This document shows positions 26,156 through 35,376 of a DNA stretch of 64,000 nt, in pieces. The number at the start of each line of letters is the position of its first letter. Position 1 is the stretch's first letter. The notes beneath the pieces were generated by a model. It ran no database searches, had not been told where the DNA came from, and was given only the letters and a program-made list of their open reading frames with translations. A program made the translations under genes and the position numbers. This DNA comes from Vitrella brassicaformis CCMP3155 (Eukaryota; Protista; Chromerida), in assembly GCA_001179505.1 (NCBI GenBank), contig CDMY01000391.1, positions 25,272-89,271 of the forward strand. Reading direction: 5' to 3'.

Positions 26156-26637
26156 CGCCAGGTGCGGGGCGACCAAGGGGAGAGCGGAGAGCGACAGACA
26201 GACAGACAGACAGACAGATCAATCCATGAGGATGTATGATCCGGGAGCAGCCAAAGCGGGGACACGCAATTGTACAGAGCGATGAATGTCATGTGCACAC
26301 GCATTCAGTTCTTCACGGCAAGCACAGCGATAACAATTGAAGTCCGCACGCACCACCGTCCGACAGGAAGACAGCCCTCGCTGCCGATCAATCATGCGCA
26401 CCGGCCGGAAAATTGATGGAAAACTACGAGCGGCTGACCTTTCTCAGCTCCACCAAGGAAACATACACAAATTGCGCCACCAGCCGGTGCGCTGACGTAT
26501 CTATCGCATCACATGCACTGCACTAGCGCTATCAAAATTGTCACATCCATGTGGAATCGGATCACATATCTTCATCCACTTGATCGACTTCAGCAGCTCC
26601 AGCCGTCCCCTGTGTCTCATCGACTTCTCCTCTGCAC
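26156..26637. repeat. Dispersed ~0.5-kb repeat, copy 2
   Basis: Homologous to 14259-14795 in the same orientation. Confidence 0.85.
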
Positions 26638-29600
26638 CACACAACACCGCACCACGCAAACCAACAGGGAGACAGACATTGGGACGTGATCCGATCGTTG
26701 TCATCATGAAATGCGGCTGTTTGTTTGTCTGTTTGTCACCTTCTCTGTCCATCTCATTCTCGACTGTGTCAGACAGCAACCGGCTTGACGGCGGCAAGCA
26801 ATCGTCGCGTCTCTTTTTCCTGCCCCTCCCTCTGTTGGCCATCTTGGCTGCAATGCCTCGTCCAGCAGGTGCGTCCATTAGAGCGTCCACCTGTTGCTGG
26901 CTGTCCTCTTTATCAGAGCGCAATGGCGCCAGAATGGCCCCCAAACGCTGCGAGGCACCACAAGTAGATAGACACAGACAGACAGACACACAGACACACA
27001 GACAAACAGTGTCAGACACGACACGTTTGTTTATGTCTTGCGTGTCTGGTGATCTGATTCCTCCCGTCTGGTGCCCCACCTTTCTCTTGCTGTATCTGAT
27101 GTCTCGGCGGCCCATGCCCACACGCCGCTGAGGCACGCCACGCGGCACAAATGTATCGAGAAGATGCACCAGCTTGGACATAGAAAAACTGTCGGTTTGC
27201 AGCGCGCTCTGGAGATTCCCTGCAAATGCCAACCAAAATACACACCACACGGATTCGGCGGTGGTCCGTCTGTCTGTTCTGTGTGGGATTGGGCTGACTA
27301 TTAAAGTTCTTGTCTGCTTCCCACCCACCGCAAAGAGCGATCCAGGTGGCGGCTTTGCCGACTTGGCATGGCACGGTCATCGCGATGCCGCCTGGAAGCC
27401 GGAGCTTTCCTTGTTTGTGCAGACGGCCAAGAGTGTGCGACGACCGAGCGCCGTGCTCGTCGTCCCAGAGGAAGAAGTGATAGAATTCATGCTCGTGAGA
27501 AGGAATGTAGCAGCTCTGCACGCACACATTATGCAGACGGCTGTCTGAAAGAGAGACCAGTGCTGTGCAAAGAGGTGATCCAGGAGGGACACGAAAACCT
27601 GCAGCACGTCACAGAGAGAAATAAGTGAGTGATTGACTGAGACACCCCTTACGCCTCTCACCATACCTGCCCGGGTATGTGTTGTGGCAGCCTCTGTCTG
27701 TGGGTGGTCTTGTGGGCTGCCACCAGTGTGTTGAATATTAACTTCATCTTCCCGCCGTTCTTCGTGATGTCTCGCACCAATCTGTCAGCAGCATGTCTCT
27801 TGTTCTCTTCGACCACTGATCGATCGTCACACATACGAGGTGAGAGTGCGCATCCGTGTCGGCTTACATGTTCCTTCTGACATTTGCCACTTCGTGCGCT
27901 TCCCTGGCTTCATGCGATAAGGCTCCAGAGGCCTGGGAAAGCACACCGTAAAGTACCTGCCTTTGTCTCGGCCTCACCCATTTCCCTTTGCCTTCTCACG
28001 TGATGGTCTTGCCGTTGAGCATGTCGATTAGCACCTCATGCGTCTCGCTGCTGCTCTGACCAAGAAGCGCCTGCTTTCTTTTCAAAGACTCCCAATACCG
28101 CCCCAGCTGGCCGTTCCTGTGCATCTGCTGCACGTAGCTGGCCAGGTGCATAGTAGTGGCGAGACACGGCGGACTGCCAGCCATGCCGAAAGCTGCGAGT
28201 ATCAGCGAGTGCTTGGATTTCCTGTAGCCGAGCTTCCATGCCCGTGAGTCGAGATAGTTGGCCTCTGTCGCCTGAACTTACACACCTCAATGAGTGCACA
28301 AATTGTGTCGTCGATGGCTGCACTACATGCCCACCAGGGTGAGATAGTTCGTGAGGACCATGTCTTTTACATCTTCAAGCTCGCCGTTCTGGTTACATTC
28401 GCTATTGAGATGGTGGACAATGTACGTCAGCGGCGTGAATACTCCCACCGTCACAGTGCCGCTCTCTAATAAGAAACGGGTGCCTCTCTGGTGTTCGAGC
28501 CTAGCGAAAGCCAGGGTGATGTCCGAAGCTATAATGTACCTGCCGTGAGCCACCGCTTGCACCAGCCACCACAGCAAGTGCCTTTTCACGACCACACTGA
28601 CCGCCAGCCACTGTCTCCACCGCTCTGGGCTGAGCTGTGTGAAAATCTTGAACAACTGCATGTTCCCAGCCCACTCGCTGCTGCTCTTCTCCCAGAGGTC
28701 CTGTGCCGCGACAGCGTTCTCCCGTATGATAAGATAGCCATTGTCGTTCGTGCCTCTTGTGTCTCGAGGGACTGAAAAAGGGATCGCATCGTAGTCAGCA
28801 TTGCGTTGAATGTCTCCGCCGACATCTGATACGCATACCCTACATGCAGAATACAAAGAAAGGAACAATGCCCTATGTGATCATCCATGGTGTCCTTGTC
28901 CTTGCACATACCTGTCTCGGCGAGGTATCTGAGGCACCTCTCTCCCTCTTGCTCGACCACATGCACCATCAGAGTGAGTCTGCCTGTGGACATTCACTAT
29001 CGTGTCTGCTGTCAGTATTCGCTGCCCTGTCTCGCCATACGGCCCTTCGAGAGCCACTCGCAAAACAGCACTGCTGTCAGCAGCAATCGCCGAGCCGAGG
29101 AAGCTCAGCCCGTTAAAGTTCAGCCGAGAGAGGTACTTGACGTCGGGCACCCATTGCAGCATGATCTGGACCATTGCTGTGTGGCCCTCCGAGGCGGCAA
29201 TGTGCAGCACTGTCTGCAGGCGAAGAGAAACGATGATGGAGACATGAGGGGGTTATTGGATTCGTAGTATATTGCCTTCTCCATCTCTTTGTCCGAACAT
29301 GATTTTGAGGAGGTCAGTCCTGGCGCCGAAAAAAAGCATAGCCTGGAGCACCCCGACATCCTCGTTCTTCGCTGCAAGGTGCACTGGAGTCCATAGCCGC
29401 TCAAGCGACATCTGACGGAAGACTCGTCTCCTATATATTTGGTCCCATGAAATGGCTCCCTCGGCCGCCGCTGCAGCAGTGGTGTTGCCGTCTCCAAGGT
29501 CCCAGAACGAAGTGACAATGTCATAGTGCCTGCAGCAAGCCGGGAGAAAATGGAAATGGCTGTGTGAGTGAATACTGCTAATGTACTTGCGGTGCTTTGC

Positions 29601-31203
29601 GATGTATGCCCTGTCCATCAGGAAGCCCATAATGAGCTACGCCATCTCGCCATTGCCATTTTCCGCAAGCACATGGAGCGACGATGTGTGGAGGTTCTTT
29701 CCCTCGCCCGGATGGAGGTCAGCCTGCATAACGATCTCGTCGTTGTGGAGTGCATACTTCCTTGTGATGGCGTCATCCAGGTTGGCGCCCATCTCGAACA
29801 TTTCTCTCACAAGATTCACACTGCCGCCCCGGATGGCATACCTGCAGACAAAAGGGAGGGACAAACACGGAGCACAGTGTGTAATGCGCACGCACGTGTC
29901 CCCTGCTTTTGGACGCCTACATGAGCGGGGTATACTCATCATGTGCATCGTGAATCGAAGCCCCGAATGCTGTCAGAAAGATGCCCTTGGGTGTGTTGAG
30001 CCACTCGCGCAGATCCTTTTCCATTTGTTCGGTCTTTTCGCTGAGGATGTTATGCGCCACGTTGTAATGGCCGTTCGATGCAGCATGGCACAACGGGAAA
30101 TATAGCGGGTCGATGTTGAAATCAGCGCGCGCATTTGCCCTGTTGACGAGCATCTTGAATATTCTGAGACGGCCGTGTTGGGCTGCCAGAGACATGGCCG
30201 AGGTGAGTGCAGTGTCGTCGGTCTTTGTAGGGTCGGCGCCAAGAGACAAAAGGGAAATCACGACTGCATAGAGAAACGCACATGAGGGTGAGCACTCCTT
30301 AAAGATGACACATACAGAGTGTACCTTTCTCGTGTCCATTCATTGTTGCCAGCATGAGGGGACTGAAACCATTGACGCCGGGGAAGTCAACAATCCGCTC
30401 GAACTCTCCCGCGCTGCACAGACCACACACGAAACTGGCTCCTGTTGCGTGCTCTTTCCTCTGGTCTTTCTTATAGAAATCTCCGTTTCGCTTGGAAGAG
30501 CATCCATTCCAGTAGCCTCAGAAGCCCGCTGCGTGCTGCGAAATGGACCGGAGCCTCAAAGTACTCGATGGCAATCGCCTCCTTTCTTCCATAGAAAGAG
30601 TTGACGGCCTTCGACTTGATCCACTCCAGGTCAAGCCGGAAGACATCGTCTGTCACGATTTCATCCACAAGAAAGACGAGAGGGTAAATGTAGTCTCGTT
30701 TCATGTCGGTTCACTCGCCTACCTACCAATTGCGGTCAGACGTTCCTTCAACAGGGGCCACTGTTTGTCCCTGTTGCCGCCCAAACCATACGAGAGGCGT
30801 ATCTCCCTGTGAATGACGATCACGGCCGCCTCGCGACACACGAGTTTGTTCCCGCTCTTGAGCCTTCTGCGCGCGTCATCGGACTGTTTTGTTGATGGAA
30901 GGACCATGTCGTAGATGAGTTGTTCACACTGCTCTGAGAGAAACAAAGGGAGGATCTTCATCACGTGTTGGTGTTAAGTAAATGATGGGTGTGTCTAGAA
31001 AGACCTTCTTGACTGATTCCTTTCATATGCCCAATTTCTTGGACCGCTCCGAGGTCCAAGAAATTGGGGACATGGAAGGTCCACCGGCTGAGTTCCTCCC
31101 TCCGTGCCTCTGGTGTGTCTGCTGCAGCGAGAGACGACCAGCTGGGCGGATCGCGCTTGTGTCTCAACTCAGGAATCGTGACTCGTACGTGCAATACAAG
31201 CTG
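26501..31203 (-). CDS. Ankyrin-repeat region of a large, probably fused and possibly disrupted gene
   Basis: Ankyrin motifs: APVHFAARSGLLRLL, FSPLMLATMNGHEKVVISLLSLGADP, AMSLAAQHGRLRIFKML, PLCHAASNGHYNV, TPLMYAIRGGSVNLVREMFEMGAN, TPVHLAAKNEDVGVL and VLHIAASEGHTAMVQIML. Apparent frameshift at ~30487 and in-frame TAG at 29637. Exon linkage below ~28000 is less certain. Confidence 0.7.
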
Positions 31204-31262
31204 AGAGAGACAGACAAAGGAATGAATGAATAGTCTCACTGAATGCCGCTCATGCCGCTTGC

Positions 31263-33297
31263 CTTTCTGTCTTTGACGCCTTTGACCATTTCTTGAACCG
31301 CTGTGTTGCAGAAGAGCAGCTCGATTTTGTGTGAGTTGTCAGAGCCATGCCACGTTGGCTCGAGGCCACCACCCGAGTAGTCATCCACACGATGCAACCT
31401 TGTGGCCGTGTGTGAAGTCTCTGTGGCGAGGAGTGGGATGCAGTTCTATACAAGACAACAACATACACACCAGAGACCAGATGCCATCCACCACCCTTCC
31501 ATAAATGTCCTTTTTGGTCCGTTCGGCTCACTTACGTAGCTGCACCGGATCGTTGTGGCCATAGCGAGGGAATCCCCACCGCACTCCTTGACGCCGGTCC
31601 GCATGTTAATGAATCGATCCCAAGTCAGCCTCACACTGCTTGGAATCGGCGCTTTCTGCCGCAGCAATTCCGACACGCTCTTGCCGTGAGTATTCAGCTG
31701 GGAGAAGTAAACACGACACATCGTCAGAACGAGGGCACCCATGCCTTCAGCTGACCTTCTTGGCGTATATATAGTAAATCTCTTTCTCGATGTCACACTC
31801 GTTGGTGCCTCGGCGGACATTAAAGTATCCCTCGTTTGCAAACTTATGACCCATGCTGTTGCGCACGATCCAATAGGGATTGCTGTGGCCGCCGCCCCAC
31901 CCCACCAGCACCATCCCATGTCTGCCTGTAAAGGGCGATATCCTGAAAGCATCAACGAGCCAATAAGAGTAGAGACGACGTGGTGTGGCTGCGCGGCGAG
32001 CTGCACCTGCCCCATGCGTAGACGGCGTTTTTGTCGTAGAGCTGAATCTCGTCCAGACAGTAGGCGAAGTCATAATAAATATCAGACTGCATGACAGCAA
32101 CACTATAAAAACGGAAGCATCCACAAAACACCACGTTACCAGTCCTGTCTCGACGAATGCGAGCGTTTCAATAGTGACTTACTGTGACGGGCAGACTACC
32201 GTAATGCATCAGCTGCAGCTGGATGCACTTGACCACCTACATGCACAGTCGTGAAAGACAAAGACACACTCGTCTACAGACACATGCACGGCTTCGAAGA
32301 GACCACGGGCATGTCTCACTTGCCTCTGCCCCCGTCAGCCGTCGATCGAGCAATGTGTCTCGCATGGTCGTGTCCGGCATCAAGAACACGCCCGACTGAT
32401 AATCTGGGTGCCGCCGCCCCTCGGGAATCTCGTGATAGTCCATTGCCTTCCATGGCCGCGGCAGCCTCGCATCACACTCAGGCACCAGGAACTTGCCATC
32501 CGGACTGTACCAAAGCATACATACACAATGATGTTGGTCGTCGTCCTTTCTCGTCGTGTTTGACCTTTTGCGCACGTTCTTGATAGAGCGACAGTGGTGG
32601 TTGTCATTGACCATCGCGGAGCCATGGATGTCGGAGGGCTGCATTGTCACACAGAGAAGACCTGTCTCTGTCAGGCTCATGGAGAGGATGATTGGCGTGA
32701 CGTTCTTGGCGAGATGATTACCATGCAGCCTGACATATAGGGCAGGCTAGTGTCAAGAGCCGCCCCGTTCCCGACCAGGTAGTCCAACGCCACGTGGATC
32801 TCGCCACCTGTCGTTCGCCAGACACCATCGATGGGCTTCTTGTCATTCTTTCCCACCTTCGCAAGTGTAGTCCTCAACACACGAGACAAGGTCCTGCGCC
32901 GAGAAGGTATGTCGATGTCCGTCCATCACAAGGGAAGGGGCGACACCGTGCTCCAGGTCACGCACACAATGCCGATCGGCAAACATGCCTGCTGCTGCGA
33001 AAGCGTAACACGCACTGCACTCGCGCTGGCACAAACAAACAGACAGACAAGGCATGCCTCGAGACACAGCACAGCCTGCTCATCCCACCTGATCTTCGAC
33101 AAGATAGCTAGGAAAGCATGTGTGCCATTTGTGTGAGGGCTGTCGAGGGGTCGAACTCATCCGGCACTTTGGCATCATAGTCACAAAAGCGAAGGTCTCT
33201 GGCGCCGATCCGCTCAACTTGTGGGTCTCTCTGTGTCCGAGCGCGATATGACACATCGAGGCCCTGAGCCTCCTGAGTGCGTTTCTTCTCTTCCTGC
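31263..33297 (-). CDS. Papain-family (C1A, cathepsin B-like) cysteine protease domain plus linker exons
   Basis: VPDEFD/PRQPSHKWHTCFPSYLVEDQ|RECSACYAFAAAGMFADRHC (catalytic Cys), FSAQDLVSC, CEGGEIHVALDYL, TGRHGMVLVGWG (His) and YWIVRNSMG (Asn), then GYFNVRRGTNECDIE. One +1 frameshift at 33147-33150. Confidence 0.85.
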
Positions 33298-34359
33298 AGT
33301 GTATTTCATGTGCAAGCTTTTACGAGCCGGTGTGAGCTAAGCTTGCAAAACCAGCACCGAACGGACGACTAACGACGTGCGTGCGCTGACTCGAAACAGC
33401 CTCCGTTTGAAAGGATACGTGTCGGCAGTGAAGATCTTTGATCAACGTGAGTGTTCGTGATTCCCCTCCTCTCTCTGACGAAGTCGCAGATCAGCAGCCT
33501 TGCCCCTTCTCGTCCGCAGCCTCGACGTTCAGGTATGAAGACACCGGTGCGTGCGTGTGTTGCGTGGTGATCAGGGGGTGGGGAGGGTGCTTGTCATGGA
33601 AGCGGGCAGCTCTGGCAGCACGAGAGACAGGCGAGTACTTCTCTCAGCGATGTGTCGTGCATCCACCTCCCCTCGTACGAGTCTTTCTTCCGGAAGAGCG
33701 AGGGCCCAGGCCGACGCCCATCGGGTGTTCCCTTGCCAACGCCGGGCGGCGGGCAGTTGCCTTGAGCGGGCCGGGACGAACTGGGTTATTCCAGGCGGGC
33801 AGCCTGCAGCGAACTCGGATGGGAGAGAGTCCTCGGACGGGACTGATGGGCTGTGATGGAGAGAGAGAGAGGGAGGGAGCGAGGAAGTAAGTGAGACAAG
33901 CCAGGTACGAGAGAGCCAGTGACACGTTTGATGGGTACATAGCTGTCAGTACAGAGAGAAAGCGAGGCAGCAAGACAGACAGATAGATAGACAGGCGCAT
34001 GTAGGCAGACAGGCAGGAAGGAGGCATTTCCTCACCATTTGGCTGAGGGCTTATACGGACCTTGTGCAGTTGATCGTCGACTAGACACAGGGCATGATGG
34101 ATGGATGGTGTGTGTGGGCGAGAGGCCATGCACACTGAATTATGGATGAGAGTCGTTTTGTCATGATGACTGACCGACTGACTGAGTGCTTTGGGTTGGA
34201 CTTGAGGAAAAATTGCCTTGGTGACTGTCCAGGGAACAGAAATCGACAGATGCCGATTGTGTTGGGCAGGTGGTCCCGACAGAAGAAATCCTCCTGAGAG
34301 AAAACAAGCATAGGAAACCGTGCGGGGTCATCGATGGATCCGTGAGACGTCTGACTGAC

Positions 34360-35376
34360 CTCGCATGTGTCTTGGTTTCTGCACTTCATGCGTGTGTATG
34401 GCAGCTGAATTTGGCCCTCCTTGAAGAACATCTGTTTGCTACTGTTACCTCCCCAGTGGTAGGCAAACCAGCTCTTGGGACTCCGCTCATACGTCACTCC
34501 CCTAAATCTCACTTCGTGATAGAATCTGTGATAGGAAGGCTCAGTTGTGGGCCCATTTATGTGGTCTCCCTGCCGACAGCCATGGCCACTCATCGGAATT
34601 TCAAACTCAAGGCGGACTCGTACACCTCTGCCCACAAACTGGACATAAGAGGCAAAGACATCGTCTGCAGCACTGAACCGCCAGCGCGGCCTCTTTGTCT
34701 TGCAGAGGCCGTCCAACTTCTGCTGCAGCGCTGTTGCCGCCTCCTTGACGATCGGGTTGGTGAGCTGTACGGCTGTCTCGCCATTGACGACATCACCGGC
34801 AGCGAGCTGATGGACGTAGGGGATGGTGCTCTCTGGCTGGAAGCGGAAGAATCTGTGAATGCGGCAGACAGTGCCGGTGCCATTATTCCATTGTTCGTCT
34901 TGCTCATCAGTGCACTCGGGATCGAGCATCTCGTTGAAGCGAAAGAGCACGAAGGGGTTGAGCTGTCCGTCGCCCTGGCCGTGATGAAGGGAATGCGCGT
35001 GGACGATCACATGTATCTCTGCGCCAGTGAAGCCCTTATGAGTGACCACAGACCCCTTTTGCCGCCTGCAGAGCCTCGCATCAGTGACCCTAAACTGAGT
35101 TGGTCGCAGTTCAGGTGTGACGGTGAGGGGGTTGGCGGCACGTTGCAGGTTGAGATCGTTGATGGCATCGGTTAGCAGCTCCTCAACCTGCCGCTTCTTG
35201 CCTTTCTTCCACTGCTGCGACTCCCCGCCGCCCACGGGGAACCACACCTCCGTGTCCGCTGGGCAGTCGCCGACAGACAGAAAAGACGCGAGATGGTCGA
35301 TGGGGCGAGAAGGAGTCCCGGAGGCCGTGGTCACCAGCATAGTTGCAATCAGCAAGGCTGTCAGCAGAAGCTTCAT
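34360..35376 (-). CDS. Signal peptide plus ~320-aa ectodomain exon, possibly tandem cystatin-like; may be the 5' end of the protease gene
   Basis: MKLLLTALLIATMLVTTASG signal-like start, long open exon and a GTCAGT donor. Cystatin-like segment PIVKEAATALQQKLDGLC...YVQFVGRGVRVRLEFE. Confidence 0.6.

Follow-up and report, generated by a model that had tools for sequence, protein, structure and literature searches.

Accessory modules are a known feature of C1A peptidases: cathepsin F carries a cystatin-like pro-region and the plant RD21-type enzymes a granulin domain, the papain-family catalytic domain being in both cases extended within one secretory polypeptide. The order of a protease followed by ankyrin repeats is described for the type III "ankyrin cysteine protease" effectors RipBH (Ralstonia) and EspL, in which an N-terminal clan-CA cysteine protease precedes about 10 ankyrin repeats, and the repeats of RipBH are required for activity and for the choice of cleavage site (bioRxiv 10.1101/2023.03.08.531657). 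Here we describe a minus-strand gene unit (positions 35376-26501) of Vitrella brassicaformis CCMP3155, in which a cathepsin-B-like protease is followed by a linker and an ankyrin-repeat array. The unit lies in a stretch of 64,000 nucleotides (nt), referred to below as the window. A preliminary description of this DNA had read the protease as spliced in frame to the whole array. We consider it likely that the locus, one of three in a gene family of this species, is degenerating although still transcribed and spliced, and that the ancestral gene encoded one protease-ankyrin protein.

The family resembles cathepsin B and cathepsin-B-like enzymes (MEROPS family C1, subfamily C1A) in its Peptidase_C1 match, its Gln/Cys/His/Asn residues, its best solved-structure matches (procathepsin B and cathepsin B) and its ancestral signal peptide. 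It differs from cathepsin B by an additional N-terminal region of about 400 amino acids (aa) and about 1,500 aa at the C-terminus (linker, about 10 ankyrin repeats and C-terminal region); in the window copy, moreover, the active-site motif is CSACYAF instead of CGSCWAF and the pro-region is out of frame. Cathepsin F and the RD21-type enzymes possess other accessory modules and are not known to carry ankyrin repeats. With RipBH and EspL, only the protease-then-ankyrin order is shared: these effectors are of the AvrPphB/EspL-type fold, enter the host cytosol by injection and lack a signal peptide, N-domain and long C-terminal region, whereas the proteases of the window and its paralog are C1A by both Pfam and PDB matches. 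The likeness is thus convergent architecture at most, with no sequence relationship. By analogy, the effectors offer the best available model for the role of the ankyrin array, and the resemblance to immune or toxin proteins suggested in the preliminary description stands as an analogy only.

We searched the genome assembly (72.7 Mb, 1064 contigs) and compared four public runs as assembled contigs; two of these runs behave as RNA, yielding spliced contigs, and two as DNA. All RNA results refer to contigs, not raw reads, and assembled contigs drop rare isoforms. Database queries were single exons or open reading frames (ORFs), and spliced models were joined solely for frame bookkeeping and copy-versus-copy comparison. 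Models of the paralogous genes came from a simple in-house gene-structure script; they are crude and contain visible errors, and the script left out the His exon in two models.

A probable protease-ankyrin gene at three loci

The region 35376-26501 forms one intron-rich gene unit. Twelve introns are visible as joints in RNA contigs (after shifting to GT..AG) and three further ones through loose ends (Table 1). The MMETSP transcript ORF P0001 (398 aa, 97% identical) supports introns 28334-28272 and 27999-27933 again, adds introns 27867-27816 and 27666-27599, and stops at 27377. The protease and ankyrin exons noticed on the minus strand in the preliminary description are real, as judged by Pfam matches to Peptidase_C1 and to Ank_2/Ank. 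Peptidase_C1 matches the piece containing the Cys exon (33067-32846, E 2.1e-6) and the piece containing the His/Asn exon (32124-31750, E 1.3e-13, reaching profile position 218 of 220), and the two scores, 28.4 and 52.0 bits, exceed the cut-off of 20.7, which assigns the domain to C1A. The catalytic Cys, His and Asn are present, as had been reported, and the set is completed by the oxyanion Gln six residues ahead of the Cys. In the last protease exon, His and Asn are in register with solved C1 enzymes (dipeptidyl peptidase I, cathepsin B), and among PDB sequences this exon matches dipeptidyl peptidase I, cruzain and cathepsin B about equally. The Cys exon alone has no match among PDB sequences at E 0.01; the catalytic Cys was located via the Pfam match and the paralog alignment. 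Among the ankyrin exons, the piece 30339-29920 (which covers exon 30263-29921) matches Ank_2 with 31.3 bits and Ank with 28.9 bits, both above cut-offs, and three further exons have weaker matches. About 9 ankyrin repeats can be read in conserved frames.

Genome searches with the first linker exon, a second linker segment and the N-domain returned three loci only: the window and loci on contigs C316 and C123. In all three, a signal peptide and the N-domain precede Peptidase_C1, which is followed by ankyrin repeats, and linker homology is shown for two of them. The C316 locus matches the window in collinear order over the whole gene, signal peptide through last exon. Its script model comprises 24-25 exons with introns of 51-114 nt and encodes about 2,140 aa in the order signal peptide, N-domain, pro-region, C1 peptidase, linker, about 10 ankyrin repeats and a C-terminal region of about 650 aa, for which no Pfam family was found. 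The peptidase motifs of C316 are canonical (NQGTCGSCWAF, GGHAV, IRNS). Procathepsin B is the best PDB match for its N-terminal half (E 1.7e-8), and this match includes the end of the propeptide (LPxxFDxR). A 368-aa ORF of C316 had no homolog among proteins of 202-644 aa. The sole public model that we found for any family member is P0002 (Vitrella brassicaformis CCMP3155; 550 aa, PF00112), which represents the C316 paralog, ends inside the C1 domain and misses the ankyrin architecture. The C123 locus (104800-110300 of G000:C123; L017, L018; minus strand) is more divergent. It encodes a signal peptide and then an N-domain similar to that of P0002 (E 1e-13), followed on the same strand and in the same order by matches above cut-offs to Peptidase_C1 (26.6 bits) and Ank_2 (31.8 and 27.9 bits); its linker similarity is merely suggestive. 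A possible frame change near 109700 was observed in the C123 N-domain. The copies have diverged to about 30-45% identity, with intron gains and losses.

The three phase-0 linker exons named in the preliminary description were recovered, joined by one RNA contig, as was the GC donor between the second and third, which belongs to a GC..AG intron seen in RNA contigs (31262-31201). A loose end at 30935 and the joint 30649/30727 connect the remaining linker to the ankyrin exons; both junctions into these exons are phase 1, in agreement with the earlier reading. The acceptor lies at 30649, as the RNA joint shows, and not at 30694 as first given. The linker exons are homologous to L010:7014-7736 of the C316 paralog. 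They match no Pfam family, and a homology search with the ORF holding the first linker exon returned nothing.

RNA contigs join two of the junctions singled out earlier (31262-31201 and 30726-30650), whereas the third, between protease and linker, was seen in none. This junction is a 58-nt intron with its donor at 31755, a position that had been misplaced to 31745. If the intron is not spliced, the frame stops at TGA 31747-31749, and the locus could then consist of two genes, a protease ending at TGA 31747 after YIYAKKVS and a linker-ankyrin gene with its own promoter, the outcome that the preliminary description had named as its refutation. No contig of the two RNA runs crosses 31756/31697. 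Run X2 has coverage over the linker exon and none over the protease exons 31698-32925, which may be chance at its depth of 4-5; in run X1 the depth over protease and linker exons is similar. One RNA contig has its end exactly at acceptor 31697, as is expected when a graph-based assembler meets a branch between spliced and unspliced forms at low depth; the AG acceptor is not a plausible transcript start, and the linker exon lacks its own start codon context. The intron has splice scores (donor 5.8, acceptor 6.1) in the middle of the range of the 17 confirmed introns and was selected by the gene-structure script under all penalties tried. In C316, the end of C1 and the linker lie in a single exon (L010:6896-7211), in which YIYPDKLTLPKDKTIRDML aligns without gaps to the window sequence YIYAKK followed by LNTHGKSVSELL. 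The start of this exon matches the C-terminal tail of cathepsin-B-like enzymes, and the ORF that holds it has an ankyrin repeat further along (E 2e-8). C123 possesses a strong phase-0 donor (AAG/GTAAGA) at the same place, right after the end of C1, with a 77-nt intron and then a linker-like exon. Two separate genes are thus very unlikely. Since no contig crosses 31756/31697, we infer from these comparisons that the intron is spliced and joins protease to linker. Spliced-leader trans-splicing at 31697 was considered separately and rejected, there being no loose end at this position.

Sequence comparison of the loci thus supports the assignment of protease and ankyrin repeats to one ancestral gene. 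The combination, retained in three paralogs through long divergence, is a genuine architecture of the family.

Lesions of the window copy

Relative to C316, the window copy carries five lesions: a 925-nt repeat, a one-base break, a TAA, a TAG and a 23-nt intron remnant. The repeat interrupts the exon of the N-domain and pro-region where the paralog carries only about 9 codons. At the one-base break (33141-33150) the pro-region frame, which runs to TAG 33108, loses step with that of the protease: in the window, VPDEFDP is read in one frame and RQPSHKWHTCFPSYLVEDQ in another, whereas the paralog reads IPLEF followed by DPREDEKVKTCFPDNIVKNQ across a phase-1 intron. The window sequence at the break is matched by DNA and RNA contigs, and the pro-region remnant aligns to paralog residues 453-490 with a local score of 85 (16/38 identical). 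An in-frame signal peptide and inhibitory propeptide are present in C316 and absent from the window copy, where the pro-region frame differs and the repeat severs the signal-peptide exon.

The other three lesions affect the ankyrin and C-terminal parts. After ankyrin repeat 1, an intron remnant (30414-30480) has no usable donor at the place where the paralog has a GTGAGA donor. Two RNA contigs (30442-30649 and 30325-30587), both spliced at their other ends, read through it, which brings TAA 30471-30473 into frame; the frame also changes after repeat 1, and no single uninterrupted frame spans protease and ankyrin repeats. In ankyrin repeat 6, an in-frame TAG (29637-29639) stands opposite an Arg of the paralog and lies within a spliced RNA contig (29586-29779). 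Finally, a 23-nt remnant (27516-27538) occupies the place of a 65-nt intron of the paralog. The transcript reads through this remnant and stops at 27377-27379, so that the conserved exons down to 26501 are out of frame. These C-terminal exons align to paralog residues 1932-1989 (score 80-84) in a frame different from that of P0001.

The in-frame fusion of the protease to the long ankyrin array therefore stood as a property of one ancestral gene, given the three loci and the single exon of C316, and fell for the window copy, which does not encode the full fusion because its RNA carries premature stops. An intact gene, with the protease spliced in frame to the whole array, would agree with the collinearity of all exons and with the conserved frames held across most splice junctions, and contigs can miss minor isoforms. 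We regard it as extremely unlikely: TAA 30471 and TAG 29637 are present in spliced RNA contigs, 30480-30414 has no usable donor, and the sole in-frame bypasses remove conserved ankyrin helices and contradict the contigs. The weak introns with which the script dodged lesions (30548-30491, 29723-29637 and 27568-27516) were rejected on account of the RNA contigs and low splice scores. A 14-nt stretch and the 23-nt stretch were also tried as real introns and rejected, their length or frame being unfit and the transcripts reading through. A compensated pair of frameshifts near 28990 and 28800 was discarded, the similarity in the alternative frame falling under the 95% level of shuffled controls.

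The lesions leave the RNA-supported message with a longest ORF of 641 aa, from ATG 33256 to TAA 30471. It encodes a protease that lacks both signal peptide and pro-region, followed by the linker and a single ankyrin repeat. The window copy could work as a shortened gene that encodes this 641-aa protein in the cytosol, its downstream ankyrin and C-terminal exons being a spliced 3' untranslated relic. The ORF is open over 13 exons, its catalytic residues are intact, and the message is expressed and correctly spliced. However, C1A enzymes normally require a prodomain to fold, which in this copy lies in another frame; the active-site motif departs from the CGSCWAF of the paralog; more than 10 introns follow the stop, which should make the message a target of nonsense-mediated decay; and the remaining lesions fit general decay. 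We therefore consider a working shortened gene unlikely.

Degeneration of a once complete protease-ankyrin gene remains the explanation that we favor. Besides the uncrossed protease-linker junction and the uneven coverage in run X2, several observations weigh against it. Long frames stay open downstream of each lesion; the decay may be recent, or pieces may still be used. A minor productive isoform is possible, given that contigs drop rare isoforms. The C316 paralog has an in-frame TAA of its own (C316:24046-24048, L010:6046-6048) inside a conserved C1 motif, where P0002 ends. No copy of the family is shown to be functional, C316 having this TAA and the intactness of C123 not being established. 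The C316 and C123 models, moreover, are those of the crude script, with their errors.

Exon layout and further features

Table 1. Features of the minus-strand gene unit, in window positions
Feature	Position	Strand	Remarks
Ancestral 5' exon(s): signal peptide (MKLLLTALLIATMLVTTASG) and N-domain of about 375 aa	34186..35376	-	open frame from ATG 35376
Probable intron within 5' exon(s)	34359-34294	-	
Dispersed repeat, 925 nt	33261..34185	.	insertion point falls exactly between codons of the exon for N-domain and pro-region
Pro-region remnant	33111..33260	-	frame ends at TAG 33108-33110
One-base frame disruption, pro-region frame versus protease frame	33141..33150	-	
First protease exon, protease frame	33089..33256	-	first ATG 33256; oxyanion Gln 33089-33091; intron 33088-33026 RNA-confirmed
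Protease exon with catalytic Cys (RECSACYAF)	32857..33025	-	Cys codon 33008-33010; both flanking introns in RNA
Five middle protease exons	32807-32722, 32638-32565, 32504-32324, 32236-32183, 32086-32007	-	
Last protease exon	31756..31942	-	His 31918-31920; Asn 31858-31860; ends ...YIYAKK
Key protease/linker intron, 58 nt, GT..AG, phase 0	31698..31755	-	exon end 31756, exon start 31697
Linker exons	31697-31536, 31445-31263, 31200-31005, 30933-30727	-	
Exon with ankyrin repeat 1 (PVHFAARSGLLRLLEWML), intron remnant 30414-30480 and start of repeat 2	30325..30649	-	
Ankyrin repeats 2 to about 9	exons 30263-29921, 29841-29587, 29529-29276, 29209-28912	-	
Post-ankyrin exons	28839-28335, 28271-28000, 27932-27868, 27815-27667, 27598-27377	-	P0001 and RNA introns
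Conserved C-terminal exons, open frames	26501..27515	-	ancestral stop 26501-26503
Introns joined in RNA contigs, protease part	33088-33026, 32856-32808, 32721-32639, 32564-32505, 32006-31943	-	RNA joints
Introns joined in RNA contigs, linker	31535-31446, 31262-31201 (GC..AG), 30726-30650	-	RNA joints
Introns joined in RNA contigs, ankyrin/post-ankyrin part	29920-29842, 29586-29530, 28911-28840, 28334-28272	-	RNA joints
Introns implied by RNA loose ends	31004-30934, 30324-30264, 27999-27933	-	

The 5' region 34186..35376 keeps the collinear order of the C316 paralog and shares 28% identity with P0002. Its N-domain has no Pfam match, no profile match to PDB sequences at E up to 10 and no usable match in the ESM Atlas. 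An AlphaFold model built on a two-sequence alignment is unusable, its mean predicted local distance difference test (pLDDT) score being 36. A cystatin-like fold is not demonstrated, given the absent Pfam and PDB profile matches; the pattern of a helix plus strands is merely suggestive.

The 925-nt repeat has a full copy of 96-97% identity at G000:C407:73316-74248 and partial copies on C701, C430, C800 and C339, and its DNA depth is 3-6 times that of its flanks. No Rfam match and no terminal inverted repeats were found in it. In RNA it is covered 7-30 times as deeply as the gene around it. An 881-nt intron (34174-33294) that would keep 44 nt of the repeat could, together with the one-base break, bring the N-domain into frame with the protease; both of its splice sites score low (1.3 and 2.7), and no such intron is seen in the RNA contigs.

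Within the protease part, introns 32323-32237 (GC donor) and 32182-32087 were assigned from the frame and from homology to the paralog. GC donors seem fairly common in the window gene: besides the RNA-confirmed intron 31201-31262, GC..AG introns at 32237-32323 and 29210-29275 are required to hold the frame.

Downstream of the ankyrin repeats, a 168-aa exon searched against 1.84 billion representative proteins had P0001 as its sole homolog. An alternative splice form was observed in this part of the gene, in which 67 nt (28838-28772) are skipped after intron 28911-28840, a single G is kept and the frame is shifted; it is carried by P0001, and one RNA contig starts exactly at 28772. Contigs of all four runs match the window until 30231 and then continue with 184-225 letters unlike it; they may represent another ankyrin gene that shares about 90 nt, or a variant.

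The proposed ancestral protein and its significance

The ancestral gene would have encoded one secretory protein of about 2,100-2,200 aa. Its signal peptide would be followed by an N-domain (about 400 aa), a short pro-region and the cathepsin-B-like C1A peptidase; a linker (about 250 aa) would lead into about 9-10 ankyrin repeats, and a C-terminal region specific to the family (about 650 aa) would complete the chain. Hydropathy of the C316 model reveals the signal peptide and no convincing transmembrane segment, including between protease and ankyrin repeats. With a signal peptide at its start and no such segment, the whole protein would enter the secretory pathway, and the earlier notion of a lumenal enzyme coupled to a cytosolic sensor does not fit. 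An intact member would most likely be a secreted or endolysosomal cathepsin, its ankyrin solenoid serving as a built-in module for binding or substrate selection, and its N-terminal extension might act as a prodomain-like regulator.

It can be speculated, with considerable doubt, that secreted "ankyrin-cathepsins" of about 2,100 aa, at least one of them functional, exist in Vitrella or did so until recently, and that in these the solenoid aims a C1A protease at its substrates, possibly proteins of a coral host, of prey or of competitors. Such proteins would be an independently evolved eukaryotic counterpart of the bacterial ankyrin cysteine protease effectors.

The preliminary suggestion that the architecture may be undescribed agrees with our searches of homologs and literature, which found nothing comparable. 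The literature yielded neither a report of C1 combined with ankyrin in chromerids nor a described C1A cathepsin with ankyrin repeats in the same polypeptide, the homology searches not reaching full-length annotated proteins of about 2,000 aa. Few proteases have been studied as thoroughly as the C1A cathepsins; their combination with ankyrin repeats is, so far as we found, undescribed, and P0002, cut off at 550 aa, hides it. The window copy is a young, still-transcribed pseudogene or a truncated gene, and thus the wrong copy for expression or assay. The three collinear paralogs show that the combination persisted through long divergence in a free-living chromerid alga closely related to the apicomplexan parasites, and the family is a natural test case for the way in which a repeat scaffold may guide a papain-type protease.

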